Below, piece by piece: positions 8,201 through 61,934 of a DNA stretch of 64,000 nucleotides. The notes beneath the pieces were generated by a model. It was given only the letters and a program-made list of their open reading frames with translations. It was not told the origin of the DNA and ran no database searches. The stretch is from positions 11,624,633-11,688,632 of the forward strand of contig OZ037769.1 of the NCBI GenBank assembly GCA_964035545.1, given 5' to 3'. The translations under genes were made by a program, and so were the position numbers. Within the stretch, counting starts at the first letter, position 1. The number at the start of each line of letters is the position of its first letter. Source of the DNA: Bugula neritina. Lineage: Eukaryota > Animalia > Bryozoa.

Positions 8201-8534
8201 TGCACTGTACCAGGAGTTCTCCCTGGCAGTCTAGCCGATTCAGGCTGTTTGCCAATTGGATTCCTCCTGTCACTCCTTCCACCAGTCCCAGTCCAGCTAT
8301 CCTCTTGCAGTTGACCCTGCAGCGGAGGGTAGCCTGGGACCGTCCGGGTACCGTGCAGTTGTGTACTACCTGGACGCCGCCCACTAGGGGCTGGCCGAAC
8401 TTGTCAACGCAGACAAGTTCCTTGCCAGCCATCATTAATGCAGAATTCTGGAAGTCTATGCGACACTGGTGTTTCTCCAGAAACGGCATGCCCAGAATTG
8501 CGTCCTCCTTCAGATGGCTGACAATAAAGGTCAC
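5223..8534 (-). pseudogene. pol: Gypsy pol (RT, RNase H, integrase) with premature stops
   Basis: RT YLDD; RNase H LDTDAS...ELLAV; integrase HHCC and D,D35E core (VAVDLVGP, IHTDQG, VERNN); GPY motif. ORFs 7080-8534 and 5223-7016 are in the same frame, separated by one TAG. Confidence 0.92.
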
Positions 8535-25609: not shown

Positions 25610-28600
25610 ATGGAGGACGGTAAGTCAGTTTTAGTGAACTAAGTAAATATAATGTAGTAGTTTTACCATTATTCAAGTAACTTATATGAAATTAGAGTAA
25701 CTTATAAGAAATTCTACAAACTTAACTCATAATGCATGCTTCTCAAAAAGATTGTGTGACTCAATGACAACTATTTTCTTTCATATCTTAAAGAATCCCT
25801 GCCACACTTTACTTATATAGCATGAAAATATTCATCTATATCTTAGCCGTCATTAGACCAACCCTTTAAGGGTGAATGGTTAGACTATTTTGTTTTATAA
25901 CAAGTTTAGTGCATGCATGTCCAAAAACCTTTCAGATTTCTGAGCTCTCAGTGCCCACGTATTACGCCGGCTTCCGGTTGGCTTCGAGTCCTAGTTACTA
26001 TATAACTAATAGTAATAATTGCATACTTTCGCTGCATGTTTTTTTTCAGCCACTGCAACACACAGATAAATCACTAAACTGACAAAAACTTTCGTACTTA
26101 GAGTACAACTAATGCTCAAAGAAAAAAAACAATTGATACCATTTTATTATTGATATTAAGAGCTAAAGCTACTTCCGTTAGAAATTTTGAGCATGGAAAA
26201 AATAAAATAGCCTCACCTCCACGATGTAATTAGAACGGGTGGTTAGGTACGGCGATAACACGATATTGTTAAAAGAAATTAGCTAAATCCAATGAGTGGT
26301 GAACTTTTCTATAAAACATTACAAATAATTGCGTATTCAATTATGTAACTTACCCTGCCTTACAAATAGATTATCATTACCATAACCGGATATTACTAAT
26401 ATAACGTGTGCCTAGTAGTACTGCTACTACTACTACTAGTAGTAGTCGCTCCCTATCTTTATAAATTCGATTTCATATTCCCATTGGACTCTAACGAACA
26501 AACTTATTATAGTACTAGTTACACTTACTGTCGACATGACTACACCAGCTTGGCTTCAAGTTCTAAAGGCAAATGCAAAAGAATAGTGTGTGAAGCTGCA
26601 ATGTGCTCGTACAAGGAAAGTCACATGTGTAAATGGCCTGCTGATACTGTGTGTGGTGAAAAATGGACCAAGTTTGTCAATATGAAAAGAAAACAATTTC
26701 TGCCTGATAACTCTCGGGCATGTATAAAGCAAAACTCATTAAGGATCGGTATAGCTACAATAATAGTTATCATTATTATGCATTTATAAAAACCCAATCC
26801 TCCCTTTGACTTAAAATATCGGGTAAATCTAACTACAAGTAATTAATACTAATACCTGTATTGGTAGTAGTAATAATAACATTAGTATTGATCAAATATT
26901 TAATTATTTGACTCGAATTTAAAATCATTAATGGTTATCACTTTATTATTATATGAACTGATAGCAATCATCAAATATTTAGCTTGTAATTTAATATCAT
27001 GCTTGCTCCAAAGCTTTAGTAGCGCAAAACTCAGTTATAATAACTAATTAAACCAGGATCAATATGAGTATTGGCATTACCATTACAAAATAAAAATTAA
27101 ATATTATAATAAATTATAACTTATACTTATAGTACCACCATTACTATTTGATTAGTAACACTATAGTTTTTAAAACTAAATCATACTGATACTGTACAAT
27201 TATAAATATTATTATCTAGCTTGCTAATGCCTAAGTATGGTAATTACTGTTAAAGCTTTCAACATAATGTAATTTTACTGAAATACGCATTCTGAAGTTA
27301 TGTAATATTTCTTGTACTAATGTTGCGTTCTTTTGTAATAGATTTTCATCCTCTATTATTCTGAAATAACTGCGTGCGTCAGTATTATAAATACTGTTGC
27401 GTATCTTTTTTAATGCTGTAATTGTGTAGTAGATTTTTGCATGTACTTATTTCCTGTTGCCCGAGATCGGCATTTCGGCTTTCCGAAAGGTTTCCCCGAT
27501 CCTCCGGCCACGCCACTCAAGACCCGGATAGCGTCAGAAGACACAGGATGGCAGGCGCCTCAGAGATCTCGGAGACCGCAAGGTCTACCCGATCCTCCGG
27601 CCTGGCCACTCCACAACCGGTTCGCGAGGTTGCCCGAGGAAGTCGCGGAGAACTCAGCTTACTCGCAAATGTACCCCAAGCTGCCCTCTCGACCTCAGAA
27701 AACCCCCGTTGTCTCTAAGACGATGAGGAGGCCCGCTGTGCGGACCCAAGTTGTGTCTCCCCCAGAGACTAACCGCTCCAGGAGCACCCAACCGTATGGA
27801 AGCAGCTACTTCCTACCCGGAAAAAAATTCGGGTAAAGCTGCCACATTCCTACTGTACACAGGGTGCACTACAAACCTGCTGAGTGGGCGTCTCTTTGAC
27901 ACCCTTGGCGCCCGAGAGCGGGCGAGCCTCGAGCCGTACGAAGGTGTGGATGGTACGTTGGCGGACGGATCGTGCATCCCTTTTTACGGCGTTATTACGC
28001 TACCTGGACGCGTCCGTGATCAAGTGATTCACGAGACGTTCATAGTCAGCCAGCTGAAGGAGGACGCCATCCTGAGAATGCCATTTCTGGAGAAACACCA
28101 GTGCCGCATGGATTTCCAAAAGTCGGTGGTGGTGATGGCTGAAAGGGAACTTGTCTGTGTTGACAAGTTTGGCAGGCCCTTGGTGGGTGGAGTCCAGGTA
28201 CTGCTGGACTGCACGGTTCCAGAAAGATCCCAGGCGACTCTCCGCTGCAGAGTCAACTGCAAGGAGATCGCTGACCTGGGGGTGGTTGAGGGATCGCACG
28301 GAGCGATCCGACTAGCAAACAGCCTGAATCGGCAAGAGCTCCTTGTGCAGTGTATCAACCCCTTCACGGAACCTGTCTGATTATCGGCCGGAGCGCTGGT
28401 GGGGAAGTACCACTCCATCCAGGACGCGGATGTGGGTCTGGCACTGGAAACAGTGGCCGATACCCAGGGAAACTCCTCTCGCACCAGCCGAAGCGCAGTT
28501 CCGGAGCATATGGCTGACCTGTACGATGGAGCGTGTGGCAACTGTACGAGTAGTACTGAACGCCAAGTACTGGCTCAACTACTCGCGGAGTACAGTGATG

Positions 28601-31600
28601 TCTTCAGTCGTGGCGATGAAGACATGGGGCTGACTAAGGTTATCTCTCACGAGATACCCCTGGCAGCCGGCACCACTCCCATCAGGCAGCCCACCCGGCG
28701 TCTAGGCCCGGAGAAAGAGAAGAAGGTGAGCCGACAGATGCAGGATCTTCTCGACCGGGATCTGATTGAGCCTGCCCATGGTGCGTGGAGCTCTCCAGTA
28801 GTCCTGGTCAAGAAGAAGGATGGTAGCTGGAGGTTCTGTGTGGACTACCGCAGACTCAACAGCGTTACCATCCAAAACGCCTACCCTCTCCCATGGATAG
28901 ATGAGTCTCTGGATGCCCTCGCGGGTAGCAAGTACTTCAGTACTTTAGATCTGCTTAGCGGGTACTGGCAAGTGCCCTCAGTCCTGATGCCCAGGACAAA
29001 GCAGCATTCATTACTCGCGACGGGCTCTGGAAGTGGAAAGTACTGCCATTCAGACTAACGTCCGCCCCGGCAACTTTCCAATGGCTCATGGAGCAGGTCC
29101 TCAGTGGATTACACTGGAAGACCCTCCTCATCTATCTGGACGACGTCATTGTCATCTCCCCAGACTTTTCGACTCATGTCAGTCGTCTGCAAGAGGTCTT
29201 TCACCATCTCCGGGCAGCTGGACTGAAGCTGAAGACCTCCAAGCGTGCACTCCTGCAGCCGGAAGTCATGTACCTGGGCCATGTGGTTGGCCGTGACGGG
29301 GTCTCTACCGACCCGGAGAAGGTACAGGCTGTGAAGGAGTGGGCTGTTCCCCGTGACCTACCCAAGCTACGAGCATTCCTAGGCCTTGTAGGGTACTACT
29401 GGCAGTACATACCTGGCTTCGCAGGGGTGGCTCAGCCGTTAAATCGACTGACCGCAAAGGGTGTTCGGTCGCAGTGGACACAGGAGGAGCTGCAGGCATT
29501 CGACCACCTCAAGCAACGGCTAATGGAGGCACCAATTCCGGCGTATCCTGATCCAGCCAAAGAGTACATCCTGGACACTGACGCCAGCGACTACAGTGTG
29601 GGAGCTGTTCTGTCTCAAGTCCAGGGTGGAAGTGAGGTGGTCGTGGCTTACTACAGCAAGACTCTTGCGGCCGCCGAGAAAAACTACTGTACCACTAGGA
29701 AAGAGCTCCTAGCAGTAGTCAAGGCGGTCAAGCACTTTCGGCCATATCTGTATGGGAGAACGTTCCGGTTGCGAACAGACCATGCATCACTGATATGGCT
29801 GTGTAAACGTGCAGAGCTCTCGAGCCAGGTGGCTCGTTGGCTAGAGATTCTTGCCGAGTTCTCTTACCGGATAGAGCACCGTGCAGGCCGGAAGCATGGG
29901 AACGCCGACGACATGAGCCGCCGGCCGGTAGAGGACTGTCAGCAATGCCTGCACATTGAGAAGCGGGACGGGGACCCGCTCGCCTTGACGTGGAAACAGA
30001 GTTAGGGGAGGGCACCGTCTACTGGTGGGAGCACGGCCATCTTCGGACCGAAACTCACCCAGACGACGTCAAGGCACTCCATGCCAACCCCACTCTGTAC
30101 CAGAATGTCAAGGAGCTGCGCCGACTCCAGGAGACGCTACCCGGCGCGGTAGCGGACATCTTCCGGGCTAAGAAAGAGGGCCGACGACCTAGCGGGGAAC
30201 AGCAGCAGCAGGGAGACGTTGAATTCCAACTCCTCTGTCGTCGCTGGGATGCCTTCAAGGTCAGTCCTGATGGCCTCCTAATGATAACGTTAGCAGCAGA
30301 CAATCGTCAGCAAGAGAGGGACCGCGTCGTCTGTCCACGCGCCCTCCGGCGGGAATTGATCTGGGACACCCATAAGCAGGCTCATTCTGGAGTCAGTCGG
30401 GTCATCAGGTGTCTGCGGCTGCGTTGGTATTGGCCCGGAATGACTCGAGACGTACGACTGCGGATACGGCAATGCGAGGTCTACCAAGCTAGCAAGCATA
30501 GCCGCCCCACGGAAACCACTGGTCGACGCCGGCTATACGCTGGTCGACCATGGCAAGTAGTGGCGGTAGACCTCGTCGGGCCTATGCCGTTATCCGCCAG
30601 AGGAAACACCTGAATACTGGTGCTCACGGACCACTTTACCCGGTGGGCAGATGCTCTGGCTATTCCAGAAGCAACAGCCCCCACGGTGGCCCGGGCTCTG
30701 GACCAAAATGTGTTCTGTTACCTCGGATTACCCGAGCAGATACATACGGACCAAGGTGCCCAGTTTCAGTCCCAGCTTATGGGAGACCTCTGCCGGATAT
30801 GGGGGTGAACCAGAGTCGGACCACCCCATATCACCCGCAAGGGAACGAAGTCGTCGAGCGGAACAACAGGATGTTGGGTGACGCCCTCAGGAGCCTGCTC
30901 CTTGGTCGGGGTCAGGAAGAATGGGACATGGTGCTGCCGCAAATCATGTGGGCTTACCACAGCACACCGCACTCCGCCACGCAGGAGACCCCAAACTTTT
31001 TGATGCTAGGCCGGGAGACACGGGTTCCGGAACACCTGACCTACCATGTCCCCGCCCCCGAGTCACCGGTACATGAGTACGTGGGGGGTCTGATAGAAAT
31101 CATGGGCAAAGCTCATGATGCACTGCGTGCCCAGCAGTGGCAGACCCGCACAGAAGACTCAGAAGAGCCCCCGTTTTACCAGGTGGGAGACTGGGTTTGG
31201 ATGGTGAGCTACCGAAGGCGACGCGAACAGTCGGCTAAACTCCAGCCCAAGTTTCTCAGTCCCTACTGCGTAGTGGAGGTGCTGCCCAACCACACGTACC
31301 GTGTGGAGCGCTCTAGACAGGTCTCAGTTCAGAGCGAGCAGCGCCTGAAACCTTACCATGCTAGCCCAGACGCAGTGGGTCAGGCTCCACCCCTCCTGGA
31401 GCCCAACTGCCAGCCCAACCATCGGGGAAGGACCACCCAACCCCGAGAGGTGGAAATTGTCGTCCCAAGGGAGGCGGATCAGGAACAGGCCGCCCTGCTG
31501 GAACAGCTTGAACAGCAGCAAAGGCAGGAGCGGCGGCAGCAGCAGCAGGCCCTAGGGCCACCACCCCTCCCGGGGGAGGACACCCCTACCCGTATTACGG

Positions 31601-34600
31601 GTGAAGGCGGGGACCTCCCTACGTTGGCAACTGAAGAACCACTGGCACTACAAGTGCCTGCCCATCCATTGAGAAGTCAAAGAGATAGGAAACCATCCAG
31701 ATATCTGGCAGACTATCACGTAGGACACATGGAGATGTTTCTACAGAGGAGTGGTACACCCAGTACGGGTAAAAACTCCGAGTCTCAGTTGCAGAATAGC
31801 CCTGGCAGTACCAGACTTCTCCAAAAGCAACAGCCCCCAGACCAGCACAGTCACCTGGACAACAGATACCCAGCTCTTTCGGGTAATGTTGGCCAAGGTA
31901 GGTAGCGATACTCCATACCCCTGACCGACTTGGAACCCCCTCAAGAGAAGGAAGATGGGGCCACGTCCCTGCTACCTGCCCAGCTGATTGGAGATGGCGC
32001 TACCGCAGCCACCACCCAGCCTCTACGGGTAGCACTGGCAAGACTGGGCAAAGAGCCTGGAGCACCAGTCAGCCAAATAGGAGAGAAAACTCAGCCGCCC
32101 CAACCTTATAATTGCCCCGTCACCGGCAAAATGTGGCACCTCCTTACCGCGAGTGCGTCCTGGATAGTGCAATCCAGGCCTGGTCCAGTATCCTTGACCG
32201 ATGTACTGAAGAGATAGAAAGCCTGGTGCACCACCTCCAATGGCCAAACCGGACAATTAGGAGCCGCCGGCATTAGCCACCCGAACTGTATATATTGTGG
32301 GTACTATTACCATCTTATATTATTGTGATACGTGTGATTAATCATAATACTTTTCTGTTAACCGCATATTTTTCTACTTTTGTGAAATTATTGTTCTATT
32401 ATCTAAAAGGGGATGCTTTTCGATGGGGGGGAGAATGTAATGGATTCTCATTCTCTATTGTCCTGAAATAACAGCATGCAACAGTATTATAAATACTGTT
32501 GCGTATCGTTCTTAATTCTGTAATTATAGTTAAGTAAGCTAGCTTGCTAATGCATAAGTATGGTAATTACTGTTAAAGCTTTCAACATAATGTAATTTTA
32601 CTGAATTACGCATTCTGAAGTTATGTAATATTTTTTGTACTAATGTTGCGTTCTTTTGTAATAGATTTTCATCCGCTATTATTCTGAAATAACTGCGTGC
32701 GTCAGTATTATAAATACTGTTGCGTATCTTTTTTAATGCTGTAATTGTGTAGTAGATTTTTGCATGTACTTATTTCCTGTTGCCCGAGATCGGCATTTCG
32801 GTATTCCGAAATGCCGAAATACCGATAGTCGGCAGTTCGGGCTACCGAAAGCCCCGAAATGCCGAAAGTCGGTGTTTCGGACTTCCGAAATGCCGAAGGT
32901 CGGCGTTTCGGACCTCCGATCTCGGCAACAAGGGAAAAACCCTATCTCTTGCTGTATATAAAAGCCAGCGAGCTCCAGTGTAGTTCAGTCTACTGCTGGA
33001 GCTCACTCGCAGAGGACCTTCAATATTATATTATTCGACTCAATGAAGATTTCTTCAACTGTACAACACATCTTGTTCTCTCTAACAAAGAGTATGTTCA
33101 GGCACTAGTTCTATTCAACCCACAAAAAAATCACACATTGAAAGCAACGTCATGACTATCATCTTCATCTTGATACAATAACAACTCAAACTGATAGCCC
33201 ATTACTGTAGAGACTAAAGACAAAGTGATTACTTCAGAAATCTCAATCAGTCAATGACAGCGTGAGACTGAGTGTGATTCTCATAGTCGTACTCATTGCG
33301 AATGTGATTCTCATTCTGCTCTAAGTATTCTTCGTCAGAGCCAGATATGCTCATATTGATATTTATATTGTATTTATATGTTATTTCTGTATATAATATT
33401 ATATTAGGTATAACTTTATTACAATTACACTGCACAGACTCAGACACGGGTAAGTTGAAAGCTATATATTTGATGCCGTGAAAATTTTTTATGAAATAAA
33501 AACCTAAATTCCACAAAAAAGCACCAATTGGGGGGCCAGACAGCAGTCCAATACGTGAAAAAATGTTAAAACTAAGGTTACATGCAACGGAAAATATAGC
33601 CTATACTTATTTTCTGAATGTCTTACAGGCGGCATTTTATCTATTTCTCGCAATTGCGGTGTAGTACGTCACAGGCAGGTGATAAAAATTCTCAAAGTTT
33701 TTTGGTCATATATGCACTAAACTTGTCATAAAACAAAATTGTCTAAACCTGAAACCCTAAAAGAGTGTTAAAATAATAGCTAAGACATGAATCAATATTT
33801 TCATGCTATATAAGTAAAGTGTGGCAAGGATTCTTTAAGTTTATGCATCTTTTTAGTTCATTTTTTAGAACTAATAATTGAAATATAATAAAATTGTAAT
33901 CAAGAATTATATGACCACTAACTATATTACAAGGTTTATTAGATTTACATTGCATCGTATTTCTAACTTGTAGAGAAAAGATATAGAATATGGTTTAACT
34001 CTGTCAGTATAAAAGAATCTGATAGAGAATGGGTGAAGATTATTCCAGATAAAAGCTACACAATAAATGGGTTGAGACATGAAAGTAAACGTCATACCAT
34101 CACTCATGTTATACTGTGGTTTAGCATTCCTCCAGATATTCACAATCTCTTCCCTCATCTCACACATTTGTTGTTGAAGAGTAAAAGCTCATCTGCCGGT
34201 ATTTTCAGGTAATGAAACTCCTCATAATATATTGTATTATTTAATATGTTGTTTATAAAACTTCTTTACCGAAATGTGCAGGTGTAGCATGAAATTATGT
34301 CCTTCTTCACCTCTCAGTTTCTTAATATTTATATTCTGGTAGTAGAAAGTATTATATATCTGCCTGCTATTTTACAGCTTATCTAATGTGTCTGATTATC
34401 TACCAGATGACATGTTCAATTCTTTACAGTCACTGAAAGAGTTGCATGTCAGTGGCTGTAGACGCAGCACTCTACCAACGAGGTATGTACTGTATATGTA
34501 ATTAATTATACTAGAATGAGGCTGTATGCTGGCCCATGAATTCAATGGAATATCTACCTCATTATGTAAATTGTGTGCATGTTATAATATAAGACTGCAT

Positions 34601-37600
34601 TAATAGCAGATTATGCAGTGTAATGAATATATTGTAACATTAAAAGGAATTATATACATGTCTGTTATATTACAGCATAACTCAACTGAGAAGTCTTGAG
34701 ATACTGAATGTGTCAGGGAATTATCCGTCTAATAATCTACCAGATGATATGTTCGAATCTTTACAATCACTGAAGGAGTTGGATATCAGTGGTTGTAGTC
34801 TCAGAACTCTACAAAAGAGGTGAGTACTGTATATATAATTATTCTATGTTGACAGAGTACCAACTCTCAACAGAGTCCTACATTGGCTGAATTTCTCTCC
34901 ATCTAAAACCAGAATTATATTATGTTTTGCATTTAATGCTTTGTTCTGTGTAACATGATAAGAACCAACTCTCATTGTATGCTATTCTCAGCTTTTGTAA
35001 CACTGAGCTGCCTTGAAAGTTTCCACTTTGAACTTTCATATTACTAGTTTCTACATAACTGAACAGTTATTAGAATATCTGCTCTATGGAACTCTTCAGC
35101 TATGATGAACCAGTACACTAGAGGGATATGTTTTTTAATTTGAATGTATAACAGTGCTGAGTTTGCATATGCCTTGTTTTGAATATTTCATAAATTATTT
35201 TAGCTTTGCATATACAATGTTTTATCCCAGGATATAATGTATATTGTTAATTATCATTGTTATTATTAATGTTTTTTTCCAAGTAACTTGTTTTGTTTGC
35301 AGTATTTAGTATAATGTAACAAATTTTATCGTGCAATCTCATTATATTTAATATGTACAGAATAATCATCTTACAACAATAGAAAGAATTATATACATGT
35401 CCATTATATTACAGCATATTGGGGTTGACAAATCTTGAGATACTTAATATTCGAGAGAATAATCTGTCTAATAATCTACCAGATGATATATTCGCACCTT
35501 TACAATCACTGAAGGAGTTGAATATCAGTGACTGCCAACTCAGAACTCTACCAAAGAGGTGTGTACTGTATATATAATTAATTATACTAGAATGAGACTG
35601 TAGGCTGTCCTAAGTATTCAAAGGAATATCTACCTCATTATGTAAATTGTGTGCATGTTCTAATATAAGACTGCATTAATAGCAGATTATACAGTGTAAT
35701 GAATGTATTGTAACATTAAAATGAATTATACACATGTCTGTTATATTACAGCATATCTCAACTAAGAAATCTTGAAATACTAAATATGTCAGGAAATTGG
35801 CTGCCTGATAATCTACCAGATAATATGTTCAATTATTTACAATCACTGAAGGAGTTGAATATCAGTGGTTGCCAACTCAGCACGTTACCAAAGAGGTGTG
35901 TACTGTATATATAATAATTATAGTTTATAGTAAAATGAGACTGTATGCTGGCTCATGAATTCAAAGGAATATCTAGCTCATTATGTAAATTGTGTGCATG
36001 TTATAATATAAGACTGCATTAATAGCAGATTATACAGTGTAATGAATATTATATTGTAACATTAAAAGGAATTATATACATGTCTGTTATATTACAGCAT
36101 ATCTCAACTGAGAAATCTTGAGATACTGAATGTGTCAGGGAATTATCCGTCTAATAATCTACCTGATGATATATTCACATCTTTACAATCACTGAAGGAG
36201 TTGAATATCAGTGATTGCCTTCTCACCACTCTACCAAAGAGGTATGTACTGTATATATAATTGTTCTATGTTGTCATAGTAACAACTCTCAACAGAGTCC
36301 TACATTGGCTGAATTTCTCTCCATCTAAAACCAGAATTATATTATGTTTTGCATTTAATGCTTTGCTCGGTGTAACATGATAAGAACCAACTCTCACTGT
36401 ATGCTATTCTCAGCTTCTGCAACACTGAGCTGCCTTGAGAGTTTAAACTTTGAACTTTCAAGTTACTAGTTTCTACATAACTGAACAGTTATTAGAATAT
36501 CTGTTCCATGGGACTCTTCAGCTATGATGATTCAGTAGACTAGAGGGATATGTTTTTTAATTTGAATGTATAACAGTGCTGAGTTTGCATATGCCTTGTT
36601 TTGAATATTTCATAAATTATTTTAGCTTTGCATATACAATGTTTTATCCCAGGATATAATGTATATTGTTAATTATCATTGTTATTATTAATGTTTTTTT
36701 CCAAGTAACTTGTTTTGTTTGCAGTATTTAGTATAATGTAACAAATTTTATCATGCAATCTCATTATATTAATATGTACAGAATAATCATCTTACAACAA
36801 TAGAAATATTATATACAAGTCCATTATATTACAGCATATTGGAGTTAACAAATCTTCAGATACTGAATATGTCAGGGAATTTTCTGTCTGATAATCTACC
36901 AGATGATATGTTGGAAACTTTACAATCACTGAAGGAGTTGAATATCAGTGACTGTAGTCTCAGAACTCTACCAACGAGGTATGTACTGTATATATAAATA
37001 ATTATACTAGAATGAGACTGTATGCTGTCCTAAGTATTTAAAGGAATATCTACCTCATTATGTAAATTGTGTGCATTAATAGCAGATTATACAGTGTAAT
37101 GAATATTATATTGTAACATTAAAAGGAAACATATACATGTCTGTTATATTACAGCATATCTCAACTGAGAAATCTTGAAATACTAAATATGCCAAGTAAT
37201 AATCTGTCTAATAATCTACCTGATGATATGTTCACATCGTTACAATCACTGAAAGAGTTGAATATCAGCGGCTGCACACTCACCACTCTACCAAAAAGGT
37301 GTGTACTGTATATATAATTATTCTATGTTGACATAGTAACAACTCTCAACAGAGTCCTACATTGGCTGAATTTTTCTCCATCTAAAACCAGAATTATATT
37401 ATGTTTTGCATTTAATGCTTTGCTCGGTGTAACATGATAAGAACCAACTCTCATTGTATGCTATTCTCAGCTTCTGTAACACTGAGCTGCCATGAAAGTT
37501 TAAACTTTGAACTTTCAAGTTACTAGTTTCTACATAACTGAACAGTTATTAGAATATCTGTTCCATGGGACTCTTCAGCTATGATGAACCAGTAGACTAG

Positions 37601-40600
37601 AGGGATATGTTTTTTAATTTGAATGTATAACAGTGCTGAGTTTGCATATGTCTTGTTTTGAATATTTCATAAATTGTTTTAGCTTTGTATATATACAATG
37701 TTTTATCCCCACATATAATGTATATTGTTAATTATTATTGTTATTATTGTTTTTTCAAGTAGCTTGTTTTGTTTGCAGTATATAGTATAATGTAACAAAT
37801 TTTATCGTGCAATCTCATTATATTTAATATGTACAGAATAATCATCTTGCAACAATAGAAAGAATTATATACATGTCCATTATATTACAGCATATTGGAG
37901 CTAACAAATCTTCGGATACTGAATGTGTCAAGGAATTGGTTGTCTAATAATCTACCAGATGACATATTCACATCTTTACAATCACTTAAGAAGTTGGATA
38001 TCAGTGGTTGCCAACTCAGCACTCTACCAAAGAGGTGTGTACTGTATATATAATTAATTATAGTAGAATGAGACTGTATGCTGTCCTAAGTATTCAAAGG
38101 AATATCTACCTCATTATGTAAATTGTGTGCATGTTATAATATAAGACTGCATTAATAGCAGATTATACAGTGTAATGAATGTGTTGTAACATTAAAAGGA
38201 ATTATATACATTTCTGTTACATTACAGCATAACTCAACTGAGAAATCTTGAGATACTGAATATGTCATGGAATTTTCTGTCGGATAATCTACCAGATGAT
38301 ATATTCACATCTTTACAATCACTGAAGGAGTTGGAAATCAGTTACTGTAGTCTCAGGACTCTACCAAAAAGGTGTGTACTGTATATTATATTCATAACAT
38401 AATATTTATCGTATAATCAGGCTGTATAATGTCCTAAAAAACTCACTTTCCCGCCTCTTCATTTATAGCTTTGATCTTTCATCACCTCAGCACATAAATT
38501 ACATTTAGAAAAGAGATGATTATTTCTAAATTGCACTGCATCCAGGTAGTACTAGGGCTAGGCTGATCTTTGTAACCACTGAAATCAAGAACTAGGATAC
38601 ACAACTTTGTATATGTAAACATTTTTGATTAATGTTCATACCTATTTAAATTAAAGCTTAGTTTCTGCATGTATAACACCTGTAGTGCATATATGAATAA
38701 CAGTGAGTGGTTTGAATATAAAAGGTTTAATTTGCACAAACAGCAGTGGGTATTTTTCATGCTTAGAACTTCATATTTTTTAAAAAAAAAGAATCTACAG
38801 TCAAACTACCTCATTCTGGCAACTTTATACAACAAGTCATATTCTATTGATATTTAATCAAGATGACTTTAAACGGAAAAAGCATATTGGGTTAAATTTT
38901 AATTATTCCTGACCTGAATGAAACTCAAAGTAGTTGCAAAAATGCTGTACTAGCGGATGATAGAATCAGTAGTCTAATTATGTGATATTTGTGTATCAAG
39001 TTTTACCATAAATTTGATGTTTTACACGGTCAGTGATTTGCTTTACTCTGTTCTCTAAACTTTAGCTCACAGTCATTTTATTTTAGTATGCAGAACCTTA
39101 AGAATTTAGAGAGGCTCGACATATCAGGCAATGAATTCACTAACATTCCACCTTCTGTGTACACATTGAGAAGTCTGCAAGAGCTGAATATATCCCACAA
39201 TAACCGTCTGAAGTCTCTAGACCCTGAGATACTACAGCTGAATCAGCTTCATGCACTGAAGGCAGAAAAGTGTGATGCTCTCACAACTCCTCCACTAGAA
39301 GTGCGTAGAGGCGGATTAAATGCTGTGAGACAATATTACAAGGATTTAGCTAAAGGCTCCGGAAAGAATATCCCATTCGCTACAGTTGCTATACTTGGTA
39401 ATACAATGGCAGGAAAGACAAGTTTAGTTAGAACACTGCAAAGCCGTGAAAGAAGAAGAATTTTGACTGACAGAAGCCCAGAAGCTGACGTGGATGAGAC
39501 AACACAAGTATTCAATGTTCAAGAAGTTGAAGTAGATGGCACAGTGCTGCGTGTCCTTGACATGGGGGGACAGGAAGTGTATCACGCGACATATCAACTC
39601 ACTTTGAGACAAAACTGTATACCAGTTGTTGTAGTCAATATGGAAAAATATGACAGCCTTTCTACTAAGTTTTCCAGTAGAGAGGCTGTCAGAAGATTAG
39701 CCTTTGACTACATGTCTCACCTCTATCTGGCCAATCCAGCTCTTGGTGCACCTAAGCTCATCTTGACTCATAGAGACAAATTTACGAGCACCAAATTTCT
39801 AGAGAAAAAATCATCGTTTCTCAACTTGGTGAATCAAATAAGTGCTGAGATTGTTAAAGAAGAGATAGAGGTTGGTGGCGAGTTTTGTCGAATTCAACAT
39901 TTCAAGGAATCAGCAGGTGGAATCTTCATTGATGATGATATTTATGAAGTTGGAATCAATGATGAATATGAAGTGTTCGACCAGATCAAGAAATCTCTTT
40001 TTCAAAGCAGTCAAACTTTTGTCAAGCCTCTGCCTTTGGTTTGGGAAAAAGTGAATGAGAAGGTTCTGCTTTTAAAATCTGGCTACAACTCATTCTGGTT
40101 TGTTCTGGCTATGCTAAGACAGCAAAATCTACAACTTGAATTTGGTCAGCTGGACATTATTCTTACTTACATGCACGATTGTGGTAAGATTCTGTGGTAC
40201 AAAGATCTGGATACCCTGAAGCCTTACATCTTCCACAAGATATCAGAAGTTACCAAACTTTTAACAGTTCTGTATCATCATGATCCCAGTGTGTGGAACA
40301 GCCGACATGATCAGTTCCTGCCATTTCTTTCTGGTCATAAAACCTTTGAGATACAAGATTTCGAAGCAGCCGTAAGTCAATTCACTGAAACCAGTATTTT
40401 AACACAGAATCTCTTAAGCTATTTGATAAAAACTCAGACCGAATTCAGGAACCACAATGATGTGGAAGTTGCTATTTGCCTTCTCAAGACTTTCCACCTG
40501 CTGCACGGTCCGTTGCATCATCAATCTGGTGATGAATCCACCGAATTGTGTTTCATTGCACCGCAATTTGCTAGAGAATACTTGAATATTGAGTACCAGT

Positions 40601-43600
40601 CACCAAAACGCATGTGCCTCCATGTTGGAATTCTGTTCAATGGCCTAGCGTTACCACACTATGTTTACCATCAGATGACTGTTGGTTTACTAGAGCGGTT
40701 TCCTGATGAAGTTGCTGATATCAAAGTCAAGAGAAACGGGGTTGATGTGTATCAAGATGAAATATACACGAGGCTGGTACACGACTACAAGTCAAGAAAA
40801 GTGCTTTTATTTGTCTCATCAGATGCAGAAAACATCTGCAAAATGTGGCAGATATTGACTACTTCTACTAACAGCATCCTCAGGCATGTTTTAGAAACAT
40901 GGCCCGCATGCAGACCAGTCCCAACAGTTCACTGTGGTCACTGCTTGTTGCTAGGCAACCCTCATCCTATAAAGAAAACATCACCTCAGTGGTGTCTTCG
41001 CTCTGTAAACTCGGCTGTTCCTCGTGTCAAATCATATAAAGGATCCTCAACAATCAAGTGTCAAGGAGAAGTAATCCCTGCTGCTTTACTCTATCCATGT
41101 ATGTTGATTTCGGTTAATTAATTAACTCGTTTATTTATTATGAATATATAAATAAGTTCTGGGCCATGATGCTGATTTACTAACATTTAGACATCGTGGT
41201 TGTATATGATATATATTTTGCACTCTGAGATATACTTTATATAATATAAATGTGTAAAAGATCTCATTGAATCCTATATAATGCAGCTCATAAAGCTCTT
41301 TCTCTTTCCTCTATTGATAAGTATTTTATGCACATGAATATTTTCATGCGAAATATATTCACTCAAACTGTAATTGCTGCCTAAAAATCTGTAAGTTATT
41401 GAATATCGCATAAACAAGTTTTCAAATAGTTTGCTTTATTGCATAGCAAAGCCTTATTCCATGTTATCAAATGAATATTTCTTTTTACCACCTCCCTTTA
41501 ATCACAATCTGAAGAATCTTTGCTTTATTTTGTCATTAAACCATCTTATCAAATTACAGGTGAGACTCTGTCAGAAGCTGATTCTGAGAAGTTTAAAAGT
41601 GCTGTCAGTGAATTGATTGCCAGAGGAGAGAGAAATCAACCAGATACTTCAGGTAGAGAAATGCATATTATTATATATATGGCTGAGCCACTAAATCTAA
41701 CTCTTGGTAAAAATGGAGATGTGTGATTTCTAGATGTTGCAGTGCCTTTAGTTTGGTTACCTTTGCAGTTCCATTGTATGCTAGACTACAACTTTATAGA
41801 GTAACACTTTTCAAAGTAATCTTTTGAATCTAGAATCCATAGCAGTACCTTTGTAGGCTGTTTAGTTCCAATTCCTTGTTTAAATCAATCATACATTGTA
41901 TAGAATCTAAATTTCAAGACATTAACTCTGTTGCACTAAAAAACTGGTACATGATTTTGTGTTCTCCAGTTGAAGATAACGACCAATCAGATCTGAGAAC
42001 TGAGGAGGTTACAGCCAATGATGATCTGAGTGATCTCTCTGATGAAGACGAGTATTTGTACCCTGATGAAGAGAAAGGTGTGCAAATGAGGTTCATAAGA
42101 CCCAAGCTGGAAACGACTACAAACTTGAAAATCAAGCAACTTTTTTCCAACACCGATAAGGTAATATTTCATATAATCTAACATAATATTTAAAGGCAAA
42201 CAAGTGAAATACATATGTAAAATATTTTTATGTAACAAATCCTTATTTCCAGTTTATAACTGCAGGTGTACAGTATGACACGCAAGAGAGGAAGAGCTCT
42301 GATAATAAACAACAAGAACTTTGATAAGAGACCAGATCTGTGTAGGGCAGGTTCAGATGTTGATGTGAAGAATATGTCTGTAATGTTGAAGGATTTCAAA
42401 TTTGATGTTGTGACTCACACAGATCTGAAAACAGAGGTAAGCATGGTGACAGTTTCTACTGAATATAAGCCTATGGTTTTCGTATTGGCATGTAAACATG
42501 TTGTAAAGCTTGGTAACTAGTCAATATTCTGAAAGCCCAATACTCTGAAGGTTCATTGCTCCGAATCTGGTTGTTTATTAAAATAGCACTGTTATTATTT
42601 TTATCTCCTAGAGACCTAGACCTATATGTATTGCATTACAATTAGTCAAGAATTACCTAAAGTAATGTTTTATTTAAATAATTTTCTCTAGTGCTTTATT
42701 TCTATTTCCGTACTGTTTATTTTTTGCATCATCTCCATAACAAATTATGTAACTTGAGAGTTGAATGTCCTGCATAAATTTCAAATTGCACTAAGCTCAG
42801 TATATATGCATGCAAAAATATTGGCAAAAAAGCCTGATTTATAAATTGTTATTCTTAGTAGAGTCTAATTATAAAAAACTGTGCAGTAGTCTCGATGACT
42901 TTAAAAGCTATTCTACTTCTACAACTTATTACTTTAATATATGGTGCAACAACTTGTTTCAGTTAGTGCGTACTAGACAAATATATGTGGACTAATAGAC
43001 CTTCGGAGCAATGGGTCTTTGGAATATTGATTCGTTTCTGTGAAGCTTGCTGACTCAGCATTTACCAACGCATAGTTAAAGGCAGTTTCTGTAGGAAATT
43101 CTGCTTTCTACAAAGTGCAGGTATCTGGTAGAATAAAAGCATTATTCAGCTAATTTAGTAACCAGCCACAAAACTTTCCAGGCTATTCTGTCTACCATCA
43201 AAGATGAAGTTCAACGTGAGGAACATGAAGATCTGGGATGTCATGTGTTGGTTATAATGACTCATGGGGGTGTAGGTGGTTTCATTTATGGAGTAGATAT
43301 GAAGAAAGTGAGTCTCACTCATGTGTATGACCTGTTGACCCCACTGAACTTTCCCGGAATGTCTGGGAAACCAAAGATTGTCATTCTGGAAACTTGCAGT
43401 GGAAGTAAGTGTTTCCTTCAGTAGAAAGTGCTTCGAGAGAGGATTGAAAGTAACTTGCAGATTACTCTAAGCTTTATCTGCTATCAATTTAGTTTATTGC
43501 TTAATCTGCTATCAATTTAGTTTATTGAATAATTGTAATTTAGTAATGGATGGGCAATTTTTTGTTTTAAGTGGGTTTTTTGTTTAAATAATTGATAAAT

Positions 43601-46600
43601 CAGCTGTAAGATTTATGTCAATCATGTTAAACCAGATATTTGGCATCACATAAAGAATATATTGATTCTAAACTTGTATAAAATGATATCACAGCTAGGA
43701 TAGATGTTGGGAACAGAGGCATAGACTCAGCACCCAATGTTGGACAAGCTCAGATAGAGCATGCTGAAATCATCTCACCCTCCCCTACCAGAACCCAAAC
43801 CGTTGAGAATACCGAGTTTAAGAATAAGAAGAGCTCTGGTGATTTGCTAGTAGCTGAATCTCCCACTGAGTGTGAGTAGCACAGCTATGCTTTTTTAATA
43901 AATCCTCATAATTGAAAATAGTCCTACTTTTCTCAAGTAATAGGAGTGTTCACAATGTTACTTTGTTTACCATTAAGACAATTTTGGCTTTATCATTTCA
44001 CAGTAAAGTAAATAATTTGCACTAAGTGGTGGCCTATGCTCACTTGGCAGTGTCTATAAGCATAACCAGTTTATTTCACAGCTGGGATAGATGCTGGCGA
44101 CAGAGACATAGGCCAAGAACCTGGTGTTGGACCAGCTCAGATAAAGGATGCTGGAATAGTGTCACCTTCTCCTGCTGAAAAACAAGAGATTGAGAATCCT
44201 GAGTCTAAGATTAAAAAGAGCTCTGATGATTTGCTAGTAGCTCAATCTATCCCAGAGTGTGAGTAGAGCAGCGATTGATAATTTTAATAAATCGTTATGG
44301 TTAATGTCACTATATTCTTCAAGCATTATAAACACAGATAGTTTTTTGCAAATCACTTCTTCTGTACATCTTTGAATGTGCATTTCACAATAAAGTGAAT
44401 AGTTTGCATTCCATACTGGATGAAAAAAATTAATATCTACTAAAAAATGAGCATTTGTTTCACAGCTGGAAAAGATATTGGTGACAAAAGCATAGACCCA
44501 GTACCTGATGCTCTACTAGCTCAAAAAGAGGATGGGAAGACAGGGTCGCCCCTTCCTGTTAGAATTCCAGGAGATAAAGATGCTGAGGCTATGACCAGAC
44601 TGAACTATGATGATCTGCTAGTAGTGAAAGCTAGCATGGAGTGTGAGTCTACTCAGTGTTGTATTTCTGTATGCATCTTCCCTGAACTATATTTACTAAC
44701 TGAATAATAGACCTCATAGAGGGTGAAGAGGTGTACTGGGGAATGCTACATATTTTTGACAGGGGTGGGCAACTTCTTTTGCTCATGGCCAAGTTCAGAG
44801 GTCAGCCAAAACAAAGAGCCACGTGGTTGTACACTTATTAAATTTGCTGTGCTGTGCTGTGCTGTGCTAATCAGAACAAAAATGACAGTTTTTACTTATC
44901 TTAAGGATTAAAAGGGTCACTGAAAAATGGGCAAAGGGCCACAAGTAGTGAATAGTAGACCACATGGAGGGTCAATAGGTGTACTGGGAATGTTATAGCT
45001 CTGTAGTCAGTATCCACTACTTGCAACACTATACTGATTGTTAATATAATAACCTGGCCAGGTTCCATATTCTCATCACGATGTGTCCCAATTTAATCTC
45101 TGTTTCAGTATTTCAGTGTCAATATTAACTATTGTAGCATTTACATCAAAGATACATCCTGTGTATGGGTCGCTAATGGTTAGAGCTCTTGTTTCTTCAA
45201 TGTATAGACATTCCGGTCACCATGATCTCTGCACTATATTCAAACAAGTAAGTTTACCAGTTTAATTTCTGTAATACAGGCTCCCTTAGCCTACCCCAGA
45301 AACAACGGTTGTATTGGTTTTGTAGCAATGATGAAGGACATTCACTTGTTCCAAGCTTCAAATAAATGATTTTTCATTTGATGTTTAGAAACAGTTGCAT
45401 CCATTGAAACCATATAACCATAATCATAGGATCATGCTAACTGCAACCACAAACTCAGCCTTATGAACCTCCATTTGAATAGTCTAAAGTCATGGTAACT
45501 CAGTAAACCAATCTCTCCCATGACTAACCATTTTTCTCCCAGTATAGTTACAGCAGCCATCACAATGCAACAAGCAAACGTTGTTGTATAAAGAGAATAG
45601 CATGTCAATAGGTGGGCGTGTCTTGTAGTGTATTGCAAAAGACATAGGGCCCTTTCGGATTCCCTATACGTAGCCTACTGGGCTCATCGATGAATTTGCT
45701 CACTTTCTCTCTGTCGAGTACCCTTCGATGAGCTTCTTTTTCGATGGGGTATGCGTTCGCTACTGAATGCATCGCGTAGGGGTGCACGTAGCACCCATCG
45801 AGTAGAGCAATTAATTTTTGATATGACCTTCGACCTTAACTGGCTGCACAAGTATTGACATTTATTTTCATAGCACACACTGGGCGGGAACTACTAATTT
45901 TAATAGTATTATCATTATTATGCGCCCTTATTCCAGCTTTCTCAGTGAAAAGATGCTAAAAAAGTTTAAACCTTACTATCAGCATGTTGTTTTTATCATG
46001 TAGCTGAGCGTGTTTAAAATTTTGTCAAATAAAGGTAAATTATTTATTTTCTGTTCTCAAGAGACTTTGAACCTTCAAAACTATGCAATGGTTTGCTGCC
46101 CACAGTAGAAGTGAATTCCCTCAAATCATTTTGTGTTACAATATTTTGCTTGACTACTTTATGGTTTTTACCCAACTTTGATGTACTTTCAGTATGAATA
46201 GTTAACTCTGCTTGCTTCATTCTACTGCTAGAAAGCTTTTAGTTTAATAGAGAGGTAGCTCTCCTTGAAAGCTTTAGCGTAGGGCCACACGACGCGTTTT
46301 ACACGTTCGTGATGTTCGAGAATACACGCTAGTGACCTGCCTTATGCCCATGACACACTACAGTCGAAACGGCATTATGCCCATGACACACTACAGTCGA
46401 AACTCGACTGTGGCGGCCATTTTGGAGCTGCTCGCGCATGTCTTTAACATCACTTCCTACTTTTTGCTGGTCACACTACAGTTCACTACAAACGATGAAA
46501 GCTAACTGTCTCTAGCCCCGCAGTAAACTTTTAACCAATAGGAATTTTGTAGATTAGTTTCTGCGGTATCCACAGCAACCAAAAAATCAAATTTAGCGCA

Positions 46601-47802
46601 ATTTATTGAGATTTACTAGCATAATTCAATAACATTTGCTATTTGTTTTTATCTTAATTTACTAGCTTCACTTATTCAAAATTACTAGCTTCATTTAATG
46701 AGATTTACTAGCTTTATTCCATCGCTTTCGCTAGCATAAAGAATATAATATGCTAATAAAATTCAGCCAAATTAGAATAACCAAATATGCTGATGAAATT
46801 TAGCCAAATTTATCTGCTAAATATTTATTTTCATGGTTAATTTTTATTAAGATGTGCATACATAACTTCATCATAATTATTTCAAAAGTAAAATAATAAA
46901 GTTTTCGAAGAACCAAATCAAATAATAATGCTCGCTAGTAGCACGTGAGATAAGTAAAAGCCCTTAACCAATCAGGGCTTACCTGGCCAGTCAGTGATTG
47001 GCTGATCGCTGAATGCTGAAGTTGAGCGTTCGACATGTCAAACTCTCATCGCATCGCGAAAAACTGACAGTTGCGTTCAGAATTCAGACAGTTGTGACGT
47101 CACAGAGGTCAACGCTTAGCCTCGAAAACGCGTTCACAGTCGCGTTTCGACTGTAGTGTGGCAGCCCCAATACACAGTACGTGTGTTGCGAGTGCAAAAA
47201 TTTATTAGCCAATGATGTTAGCGTTAAACTTTACTGCTCGCCTACAGGCGTTTGTTTTTAAAACTACGTCATCGGCAAAGTGATTTGGATATTATAAAAG
47301 CGGAAATGCCAACTATATAAAACTGTGCTCGCTAAATATCACATGGTAATAAGCCAATTAGATCAAACACGCACGAGCGTGCCGCTGAGTTCGCTCAGCA
47401 TGCATGCTAGACGCATGAAAATCTCGCTCATTATGTCCAATTTTTGGGCTAAACGTGATTTCTTGCACAGCAACAAGGCTTATAGTAGCACTCATACTTT
47501 CCACTATGACATCATCCTTCTGTCTGAGTATCAAAAGTTAGAATTCTGGGATATTTGACTCATGTCACATGACTCGTAGTCACATAGCTTCAAGTCATAA
47601 ACTTTTTTCTTAGAAATGTAAATTGTTGAAACTTACAGTTAATTATGATTATGTTTAGGTACAGACTAAAGTCAGGAAACTGTGCCTAGAGAAAAGGTTA
47701 GACAGTGGACAGCTGGTTGTAGCCTGGGATACTCTCACTCACATGAGAAAACTTTACCTGTTTCCTGGTTTCAATGGATACAAAAGAGATGATAACTCTT
47801 AA
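25610..47802 (+). CDS. LRR-ROC-COR-caspase fusion protein (Roco-family GTPase with C-terminal caspase), about 1640 aa
   Basis: Phase-compatible GT/AG exons: 25610-25619 (ATG, tentative), 33974-34070 (tentative), 34125-34208, 34378-34482, 34676-34819, 35415-35558, 35752-35895, 36098-36241, 36835-36978, 37155-37298, 37891-38034, 38228-38371, 39087-41098, 41560-41652, 41970-42160, 42266-42436, 43182-43404, 43695-43871, 44082-44258, 44466-44642, 45138-45247, 47659-47802. Total 4923 nt, divisible by 3, no internal stop. Confidence 0.85.
27751..31905 (+). pseudogene. pol: Gypsy 3 pol (PR-RT-RH-IN), frameshifted
   Basis: Protease FLLYTGCTTNLL (catalytic D>Y), YLDD, LDTDAS and integrase core; several frameshifts and stops; close homolog of element 1. 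Confidence 0.92.
32436..33177 (+). repeat. 3' LTR of Gypsy 3
   Basis: TGTAATGG...TGATACA, TATATAAAAG at about 32955, and a CCGA/TCGG motif array at 32783-32925. Confidence 0.8.
34378..38371 (+). repeat. Tandem array of LRR cassette exons (1 x 105 nt and 8 x 144 nt, all phase 2-2)
   Basis: Each 144-nt exon encodes two LRRs (48 aa), consensus IxxLxNLEILNxSxNxLSNNLPDDxFxSLQSLKELxISxCxLxTLPKS. Introns are either about 176-202 nt or about 592-595 nt and near-identical within each class. Confidence 0.95.
39087..41098 (+). CDS. Large exon encoding the last LRRs, ROC GTPase and COR domain
   Basis: LRRs ending PPLEVRRGGLNAVRQYY (Roco pre-ROC motif), P-loop GNTMAGKTS, G3 DMGGQ, G4 THRD, COR motifs PLVW and YMHDCGKILWY. 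Confidence 0.92.
42266..43404 (+). CDS. Caspase large (p20) subunit exons 42266-42436 and 43182-43404
   Basis: YSMTRKRGRALIINNKNF...RAGSDVD; catalytic His in VIMTHG; GKPKIVILETCSG carrying the catalytic Cys. Confidence 0.92.
43695..44642 (+). CDS. Three paralogous 177-nt phase 1-1 exons (L1, L2, L3), each encoding the caspase intersubunit linker plus the first p10 strand
   Basis: 43695-43871, 44082-44258 and 44466-44642 each begin cacag|CT and end GAG T|gtgagt; all are open; they end GDLLVAESPTE, DDLLVAQSIPE and DDLLVVKASME. Confidence 0.88.
45138..47802 (+). CDS. Caspase small (p10) subunit exons 45138-45247 and 47659-47802
   Basis: FTSKIHPVYGSLMVRALV...HDL..IFKQV...Q....DTLTHMRKLYLFPG matches the p10 pattern. 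Confidence 0.88.
46275..47465. mobile_element. Copy-specific intronic insertion of nested Harbinger-like MITE sequence
   Basis: Absent from the paralogous intron at about 1795; inverted repeats CACACTACAGTCGAAAC / GTTTCGACTGTAGTGTG. Confidence 0.65.
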
Positions 47803-61600: not shown

Positions 61601-61934
61601 AACTCAATTTTGGGTTAGTTACGAGTTTTTTTTATGTGTCGGAGTAACGATAGCTTTAGGTTCCTTAGTTGTGTTCCACACAAGACTGATTAGCAGAGGG
61701 GAGACGAGTATAGAGAAGCACATTAACAATAAGGAAAGACGGCGAGTGAATGAACTCGGTAAGACCTACAGAAATCCTTATCACTTTGGATTCACTCGTA
61801 ACTGGAGAATGTTTTTTGGCATAGAAGAAGGTACTGGTAGATCCTGGCGTCACGTGCTCCTTCCATCAACTCATAAACCGACAGGAGATGGCACAGCTTG
61901 GAAAACATTTTCAGCCACCTCCAAGTTCGACTGA
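58630..61934 (+). CDS. ZDHHC16: DHHC palmitoyltransferase, ZDHHC16-like (exons 58630-58740 and 60954-61934, about 363 aa)
   Basis: CKSC...[42 protein letters not shown] and NPY.FG...NW motifs. The N-terminal ADT-ILDPVY...[11 protein letters not shown] and C-terminal [12 protein letters not shown] segments resemble ZDHHC16. Confidence 0.88.

Follow-up and report, generated by a model that had tools for sequence, protein, structure and literature searches.

A Bugula neritina gene joining leucine-rich repeats, a Roc-COR module and a caspase domain, and its multi-copy family

Roco proteins carry a Roc GTPase domain followed by a COR domain, and the described members differ in their effectors: MFHAS1 has none, LRRK and DAPK1 have a kinase, and others have a death domain. 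Proteins that combine leucine-rich repeats (LRRs) and Roc-COR with a TIR or Death domain are reported from sea anemones and Aplysia (PMC5094078, PMC9334734). In bacteria, LRR-AP-GTPase-COR-effector conflict systems have been described whose roughly 24 effector types include caspase (Kaur et al. 2021; PMC8195603), and amphioxus “LRRs-caspase” hybrids were suggested to couple recognition directly to apoptosis (Zhang et al. 2008; PMC2575513); the 2008 paper does not mention Roc-COR, and this class was presented there without a complementary DNA check. Here we describe a gene of the bryozoan Bugula neritina that encodes LRRs, Roc, COR and a C-terminal caspase in one chain. It lies in a window of 64,000 nucleotides (nt) of low-GC animal DNA (contig OZ037769.1, positions 11624633-11688632), drawn from a 216-Mb genome; coordinates below are those of the window.

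The gene model runs on the plus strand from an ATG at 25610 to a stop codon at 47802 and comprises 21 coding exons with 4,977 coding nt, corresponding to about 1,658 amino acids. Every junction is a canonical GT/AG pair and phase-compatible, and a frame check found all 21 exons open. The encoded order is an N-terminal cap, about 21 LRRs, the Roc GTPase, COR, an acidic linker, and a caspase made up of p20, a long triplicated intersubunit linker and p10 (Table 1). All domain searches were run exon by exon, and structure prediction was done on the product of the large exon alone. An initial annotation had read the locus as one gene for one LRR-Roc-COR-caspase chain; each of the parts it listed is found where it had placed them, with the exons in phase and joined by RNA from COR to caspase. 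From the RNA, a conserved splice donor, genome-wide linkage and gene models in other species, we conclude that LRR-Roc-COR-caspase is a single transcribed and spliced gene encoding a single chain.

The joint between the Roco and caspase parts was examined with RNA contigs from four public runs, belonging to four studies, placed on positions 40400-46399. Single contigs of 308 nt from two of these studies cover 40954-41098, 41560-41649 and the sequence from 41967 onward, and a third study shows the same joints. GT..AG joints were seen in RNA at 41098>41560 (90-92 letters on the shorter side), 41652>41970, 42160>42266, 42436>43182, 43404>43695 and 44642>45138, and those from 41098>41560 to 43404>43695 are each supported by up to three independent studies. 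The junctions at 41098, 41560, 41970 and 42266, for which the initial annotation had asked for transcript evidence, thus appear exactly as predicted. Since the RNA splices from 41098 to 41560, the in-frame stop at 41119-41121 is intronic. Transcripts ending at 41121, the outcome that would have divided the gene in two, are contradicted by these spliced contigs and by an RNA depth of zero in the bin 41200-41399, within the first intron after COR, in all four runs.

The same boundary can be followed in the paralogs. In a sample of 20, which are 50-98% identical to this gene over the final 100 residues of the large exon, the end of the ROC-COR exon is invariably marked by one and the same Pro codon and, after it, C-A/C/G-T|GTATGT, with the phase unchanged. 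Reading on past the donor gives differing sequences that reach a stop after 4-42 codons, and a conserved donor followed by divergent read-through tails is the signature of an exon-intron boundary. The order of the downstream exons is the same in all 20, barring exons that went undetected in the more divergent copies; linker exon 2 went undetected in a divergent subgroup of three alone (L023, L025 and L028). Genome-wide, every one of 66 scored ROC-COR exons is followed on its own strand by a caspase His/Cys exon, and for none of them does such an exon lie on the opposite strand. With a shorter query from the COR end, 109 of 110 matches have a same-strand downstream caspase exon, 104 of them within 5 kb and at a median distance of 1.7 kb.

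At least 109 loci share the arrangement from ROC-COR to caspase and make up the lineage-specific family to which the gene belongs. Most of the loci form large arrays on contigs C1 and C6, and the gene studied here is the last of three tandem copies on contig C5. Among the 136 caspase-type His/Cys exons found in the genome, 109 are Roco-linked. A six-frame search of the genome for NACHT gave one weak match (33 bits), a type of search in which exon-split domains are harder to catch, and none of the exons of the gene itself contains NACHT or NB-ARC, the fold of its central module being Roc-COR. The subgroup L023, L025 and L028 (contigs C3 and C1) has HACSG as its active-site motif, a longer first p20 exon and 35-48% identity to the caspase exons of this gene, which suggests either an exchange of effector domains or an old divergence within the family.

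The central module is encoded by the large exon, which contains the P-loop GNTMAGKTS and the motifs DMGGQ and THRD, with about 380 further residues after Roc. Pfam Roc (PF08477) matches at 34.3 bits against a cut-off of 27, and the G1, G3 and G4 motifs (GxxxxGKT/S, DxxG and T-H-x-D) show little or no variation among 39 aligned homologues, in agreement with the intact Roc GTPase first read from the motifs. As for COR, Pfam COR-A and COR-B gave no significant match on this sequence, and a profile of the ROC-COR exon compared with PDB sequences matched LRR and Roc regions (CtRoco, LRRK1, LRRK2 and MbRoco2) and did not reach COR. The AlphaFold2 model of the exon product (predicted local distance difference test score, pLDDT, 88; predicted template modelling score, pTM, 0.85) has its best structural matches in Roco proteins only, namely LRRK1, LRRK2, the Chlorobium tepidum LRR-Roc-COR structure (6hlu), RocCOR (3dpu) and COR alone (3dpt); for the isolated COR of 3dpt the E-value is 3e-9 and the template modelling score by target 0.62-0.66. 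Homologues at 32-38% identity carry Pfam COR-A or COR-B. The modelled fold, in place of Pfam, thus supports the earlier assignment of a COR domain, which in the model directly follows Roc. With Roc followed by COR, the protein has the features that define the Roco family and belongs to it. The COR region ends in a Cys/His cluster (40933-41100, residues ~616-671 of the large exon), in which 39 homologues show no variation at C616, H618 and C619 and almost none at C658 and at the Cys whose codon is split at the donor. The cluster could be a zinc site; we know of no description of such a cluster in COR domains.

In the C-terminal part, Pfam Peptidase_C14 (PF00656) matches both p20 exons, and the second of these aligns with CED-3 and caspases 8, 2 and 9, which places the His in IMTHGG and the Cys in ETCSG. 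With a caspase-tail profile derived from 12 homologues in amphioxus and Watersipora, all four caspase exons align collinearly (profile positions 45-320); in BLASTP, the single p10 and linker exons gave only short, insignificant matches to the amphioxus caspase domain. The Peptidase_C14 (C14A) fold is accordingly represented by p20, p10 and the His-Cys dyad. Of the complete caspase claimed initially, the fold and the dyad hold, and the substrate-binding residues depart from the canonical ones. The pentapeptide is ETCSG and not QACXG, with E-(T/V/A)-C-S-G in most sampled paralogs, so that the Gln283 position, two before the catalytic Cys, is Glu in this gene and in most of them. Arg179 is kept here and in 17 sampled copies of the main family, and the Arg341-equivalent is Ile; by these assignments, which come from alignment only, the Asp-binding S1 pocket (Arg179, Gln283 and Arg341) is not conserved as a whole. 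The cleavage specificity may differ from that of classical Asp-directed caspases. Two of the 20 sampled paralogs lack the catalytic Cys, L027 (EAASG), whose ROC-COR exon also contains a stop codon, and L029 (EASSG).

Paralogs differ in having one, two or three intersubunit-linker exons. In RNA of this gene type, three linker exons of 177 nt are joined in series, which speaks against mutually exclusive use. Each copy ends with a duplicate of the motif of the first p10 strand, and only the last copy can be the real strand.

The LRR region is dominated by nine tandem cassette exons (34378-38371), eight of which are 144 nt long, each coding for a pair of 24-residue LRRs. The cassettes all begin and end in phase 2, with near-identical acceptor (ttacag) and donor (gtgtgtac) contexts. 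Together with one LRR-like unit in exon 2 and about three LRRs in the large exon the total is about 21, close to the 20 or so estimated at first. The cassette units are of two alternating types, and the flanking introns are near-identical at most within one type: across the eight full cassettes the 60 nt before the exon are 73% identical and the 40 nt after it 70%, compared with 83% for the exons. The ratio of nonsynonymous to synonymous differences per site (pN/pS) was computed region by region in comparisons with both near and more remote paralogs; the caspase exons give about 0.2, Roc 0.2-0.3 and COR 0.3-0.4. For the last LRRs it reaches 0.9-1.0 against the two tandem copies, and among the eight full cassette exons of this gene it is 0.61, with the variable residues gathered at few repeat positions. 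The low values for caspase, Roc and COR point to a maintained function, and a conserved switch and effector combined with a rapidly changing repeat surface would be the pattern expected of a receptor family, without amounting to proof of one.

At the 5′ end, the start at ATG 25610 put forward in the initial annotation fits the data, in that the phase 1 end of the mini-exon matches the phase 1 beginning of exon 33974-34208, and the phase 2 end of that exon suits the first LRR cassette. Both exons are conserved upstream of paralogs. Each of the four closest paralogs is preceded by the segment 25575-25661, its orientation unchanged, and the 77-codon exon 2, which has no Pfam match, is matched 57 times in the genome without stop codons, ahead of paralogous ROC-COR exons. 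Intron 1 measures 8.4 kb, compared with ~0.1-2.5 kb in paralogs where both flanking exons were located, because a 5.6-kb retroelement with long terminal repeats (LTRs) is inserted at 27216-32811. It is of the Ty3/gypsy type and lies on the plus strand; its 273-nt LTRs (27216-27488 and 32539-32811) are 98% alike, and its reverse transcriptase, RNase H and integrase-like open reading frames are split across several frames. The predicted N-terminus has no hydrophobic signal sequence, and the protein is therefore probably cytosolic.

On balance, we favour reading this gene as a sensor, a switch and an effector in a single chain, and consider that somewhat probable. The fast-evolving LRR surface would bind a ligand or hold the protein in an autoinhibited state, and Roc-COR, acting as it does in other Roco proteins, would respond to an event at the LRRs by a nucleotide-dependent shift in oligomeric state or conformation. 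This change would unite two caspase domains, or free them, and thereby activate them, and the resulting proteolysis would lead to cell death or another defence with no death-fold adaptors involved. The same logic has been proposed for the bacterial LRR-AP-GTPase-COR-effector proteins (PMC8195603) and for the amphioxus LRRs-caspase hybrids (PMC2575513). For the present gene, the backing is limited to the contrast between fast LRRs and constrained Roc, COR and caspase exons.

Several observations weigh against the sensor-switch-effector reading or against its application to this particular copy. Bacterial CtRoco is reported to be dimeric when nucleotide-free or bound to GDP and monomeric with GTP, in which case the “on” nucleotide state of the proposed switch would not be predictable. 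A homodimer prediction with two copies of residues 300-670 (COR) returned a score of 0.00, which is no answer and speaks neither for nor against dimerisation. The position of Arg341 is occupied by Arg, Ser, Val or Ile among the paralogs, with Arg in many of them; the Ile found here, together with ETCSG, makes classical Asp specificity, and perhaps activity, uncertain. As regards transcripts, the two first exons are backed by paralog conservation and have no RNA support at this locus, the joint 44258>44466 between linker exons B and C rests on short sides of 21-24 letters, and the loose RNA ends after 45246 resemble the last exon and are not identical to it. The RNA contigs are 95-99% alike, and their variant letters are mixed, some agreeing with this copy, some with its two tandem neighbours and some with neither. 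The contigs come from alleles of other individuals or from near-identical paralogs, and the splice pattern is proven for the gene type, not strictly for this copy.

Two alternatives concern the gene itself. If the locus held two neighbouring genes, with the stop at 41119-41121 closing a Roco gene and a caspase gene of its own beginning near 42086 or 42275, the in-frame stop 21 nt past the proposed donor would be accounted for, as would the ATG codons that occur both in linker exon 2 and where the first caspase exon begins. This arrangement is extremely improbable, given that single contigs from two studies span the COR exon and both linker exons, with the same joints in a third, that the intron has no RNA depth, that conservation extends to the donor and stops at the read-through tails, and that the 109 of 110 linkage is accompanied by fused gene models in other species. 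It is also very unlikely that this copy is a decaying duplicate, itself unexpressed or non-functional, with the RNA stemming from its tandem neighbours. Such decay would agree with the contig variants that match copy 2 or copy 3 at several places, with the 5.6-kb LTR retroelement in intron 1 and with the loss of the Arg341-equivalent, but all 21 exons are open and in phase, the splice sites and the catalytic and GTPase motifs are intact, many contig variants match neither neighbour, and outside the LRRs the comparison with the neighbours gives a pN/pS well below 1.

Granted an intact single gene, what its product does can be construed differently at both ends of the chain. The caspase-like domain may be no Asp-specific executioner, either because it prefers another P1 residue or because it is a non-catalytic module for dimerisation or scaffolding, and “executioner” would then be the wrong word. 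The replacement of Gln283 by Glu in all of the main family (E-T/V/A-C-S-G), the R/S/V/I variation at the Arg341-equivalent with Ile here, and the loss of the catalytic Cys in L027 and L029 all lean this way, as does the retention of QAC(R/S/G)G and Arg in Watersipora and amphioxus homologues. We nevertheless consider it unlikely, with an appreciable chance of being right: 18 of the 20 sampled paralogs retain both His and Cys, the Arg179-equivalent is present in the 17 main-family copies and an Arg precedes Gly at that place in the HACSG subgroup also, and the purifying selection suggested by a pN/pS of ~0.2 over the caspase exons would fit an active enzyme. At the sensor end, the fusion may be real and yet have a main role other than pathogen sensing, with LRRs that bind endogenous partners in developmental or colony-level cell death or in allorecognition; polypide degeneration and regeneration, metamorphosis and allorecognition between colonies may serve as examples. 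Caspases are chiefly cell-death proteases, ordinary RNA runs of several studies, made without any challenge, contain the transcripts, and large polymorphic tandem families suit allorecognition as well, in keeping with the self/non-self fusion systems of colonial animals (PMC8195603). More than 100 copies with fast LRRs and a constrained effector resemble an immune-receptor repertoire and not a housekeeping death pathway, and we regard a non-pathogen role as distinctly doubtful, noting that the present data fit immunity and allorecognition alike.

If the sensor-switch-effector mechanism is true, the gene would represent a minimal, adaptor-free circuit from recognition to protease, with the logic of the inflammasome and apoptosome built on a Roco GTPase. 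Roc-COR switching, which is still debated for LRRK2, would become testable in a protein with an easy readout (proteolysis or cell death). The family would also offer a handle on how lophotrochozoans build an immune repertoire, in a genome that appears nearly devoid of NACHT and has four fifths of its caspase-type exons linked to Roco, and it would illustrate how far caspase specificity can drift. In a more speculative extension, which we think rather unlikely, more than 100 cytosolic LRR-Roco-caspases, and not NLRs, would be the main intracellular non-self repertoire of the bryozoan lineage. They would act as adaptor-free units with a caspase retuned (Glu283, variable 341) to non-Asp or broadened specificity, as a third, GTPase-based solution to the inflammasome/apoptosome problem in animals. 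This significance is tempered by the presence of the architecture in public protein sets and by the remarks already made on it, without experiments, for amphioxus and bacteria.

Table 1. Coding exons of the LRR-Roc-COR-caspase gene in the window
Feature	Position	Strand	Remarks
Putative first coding mini-exon (ATG GAG GAC G), 10 nt	25610..25619	+	Donor GTAAGT at 25620; phase 1 out
Exon 2, N-terminal cap and first LRR-like unit	33974..34208	+	Phase 1 in, 2 out; splice sites read
LRR cassette exon 1, short, 105 nt	34378..34482	+	
LRR cassette exon 2, 144 nt, two LRRs	34676..34819	+	Phase 2/2
LRR cassette exon 3	35415..35558	+	
LRR cassette exon 4	35752..35895	+	
LRR cassette exon 5	36098..36241	+	
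LRR cassette exon 6	36835..36978	+	
LRR cassette exon 7	37155..37298	+	
LRR cassette exon 8	37891..38034	+	
LRR cassette exon 9	38228..38371	+	
Large exon: three last LRRs, Roc, COR-A/COR-B, Cys/His-rich tail	39087..41098	+	Pfam Roc and LRR; fold; RNA joint 41098>41560 in three studies; donor GTATGT at 41099
Linker exon 1, 31 codons, phase 1/1	41560..41652	+	RNA joints on both sides; recognisable in closer paralogs only
Linker exon 2, acidic stretch and conserved motif ending just before caspase	41970..42160	+	RNA joints; 17/20 sampled paralogs
Caspase p20 exon 1, with Arg179-equivalent	42266..42436	+	PF00656 1.4e-9; RNA joints; profile match
Caspase p20 exon 2, His (IMTHGG) and Cys (ETCSG)	43182..43404	+	PF00656 8.6e-10; CED-3/caspase-8 alignment; RNA joints
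Intersubunit-linker exon A, 177 nt, phase 1/1	43695..43871	+	RNA joints 43404>43695, ~43871>44082
Intersubunit-linker exon B, duplicate of A	44082..44258	+	RNA contig A-B; 44258>44466 joint weak
Intersubunit-linker exon C, end = first p10 strand	44466..44642	+	RNA 44642>45138 in four runs; weak profile match at end
Caspase p10 exon a, substrate-loop region, Ile at Arg341-equivalent	45138..45247	+	Profile 2.8e-6; 20/20 sampled paralogs
Caspase p10 exon b and stop codon	47659..47802	+	Profile 2.8e-5; 18/20 sampled paralogs

Elsewhere in the window, a second retroelement at 5223-8534 on the minus strand has open reading frames with RVT_1, RT_RNaseH, an integrase zinc-binding domain and rve, and sits in a GC-rich block (GC 0.58) between the gene and its upstream tandem copy. 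Downstream of the gene, a 260-residue open frame on the plus strand (61152-61934) contains a DHHC palmitoyltransferase domain (PF01529, 3e-32) and is probably an exon of an unrelated neighbour gene. The segment 56001-58000 is extremely AT-rich, with a GC of 0.119 over 2 kb.

Compared with the Roco proteins best known from animals and bacteria, the gene has the LRR, Roc, COR order of those without a kinase (MFHAS1/MASL1-like) and of LRRK1, LRRK2 and CtRoco. Its T-H-x-D G4 motif resembles that of LRRK2, and its predicted fold, including COR, superposes on LRRK1, LRRK2 and CtRoco, although sequence identity to the solved Roco proteins is only 12-15%. The caspase at its C-terminus sets it apart from the effector-free, kinase-bearing and death-domain members. 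That fusion also departs from MFHAS1, which lacks an effector; the RefSeq label of its nearest homologues, “MFHAS1 homolog”, is automatic.

The nearest named relatives are RefSeq gene models of another bryozoan, Watersipora subatra, with 31-38% identity over the ROC-COR exon and the same architecture from LRR to caspase. They include XP_067947674.1 (1,419 residues), XP_067948342.1 (1,413 residues) and about ten more, from several loci on several chromosomes. These models are automatic predictions, and unlike the B. neritina gene they keep QACSG or QACGG and the Arg; the dozen or so models in Watersipora compare with at least 109 loci in B. neritina. In amphioxus, where UniProt and RefSeq models of Branchiostoma show the fusion, the B. 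floridae protein C3XQ16 / XP_002614028.1 (1,609 residues) has LRR, Roc, COR-A, COR-B and Peptidase_C14 in the same order as the gene, and the LRR-Roc-COR-caspase proteins form multi-copy families there too, but they keep QACRG and the SWR arginine where the gene has ETCSG and Ile. Other Branchiostoma LRR-Roc-COR paralogs have a glycosyltransferase (PF00534/PF13692/PF20706), OTU (PF02338) or Death (PF00531) domain in place of the caspase or beside it; the Roco scaffold swaps effectors in amphioxus, as it does in the bacterial systems. The architecture is therefore not unique to this gene. The initial view that it was not already well described has to be qualified by the public Watersipora and Branchiostoma models and by the 2008 and 2021 papers (PMC2575513, PMC8195603), and it holds to the extent that the literature searched (Roco and caspase; bryozoan or Bugula and caspase; amphioxus, ROC/COR and caspase) describes or tests no animal LRR-Roc-COR-caspase protein and contains no bryozoan expansion.

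The bacterial LRR-AP-GTPase-COR systems share with the gene the fast-evolving N-terminal LRRs, a Roc-type GTPase, COR, a C-terminal effector and a proposed switch dependent on nucleoside triphosphate, but they are prokaryotic, are known by comparative genomics only, and have a caspase-like domain rather than an animal-type caspase (PMC8195603). A further sensor-caspase fusion occurs in another lophophorate, the brachiopod Lingula anatina, where a protein named interferon-induced helicase C domain-containing protein 1 combines helicase and RIG-I C-terminal domains with Peptidase_C14. With NLR inflammasomes and the Apaf-1/CED-4 apoptosome, the gene shares a logic that combines a sensor made of repeats with a nucleotide switch and activates the caspase by induced proximity. 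Unlike these systems, it has neither NACHT nor NB-ARC and no CARD, PYD or DED adaptor, and instead places a small GTPase switch and the caspase in the same chain, so that the resemblance is one of analogy and not of membership.

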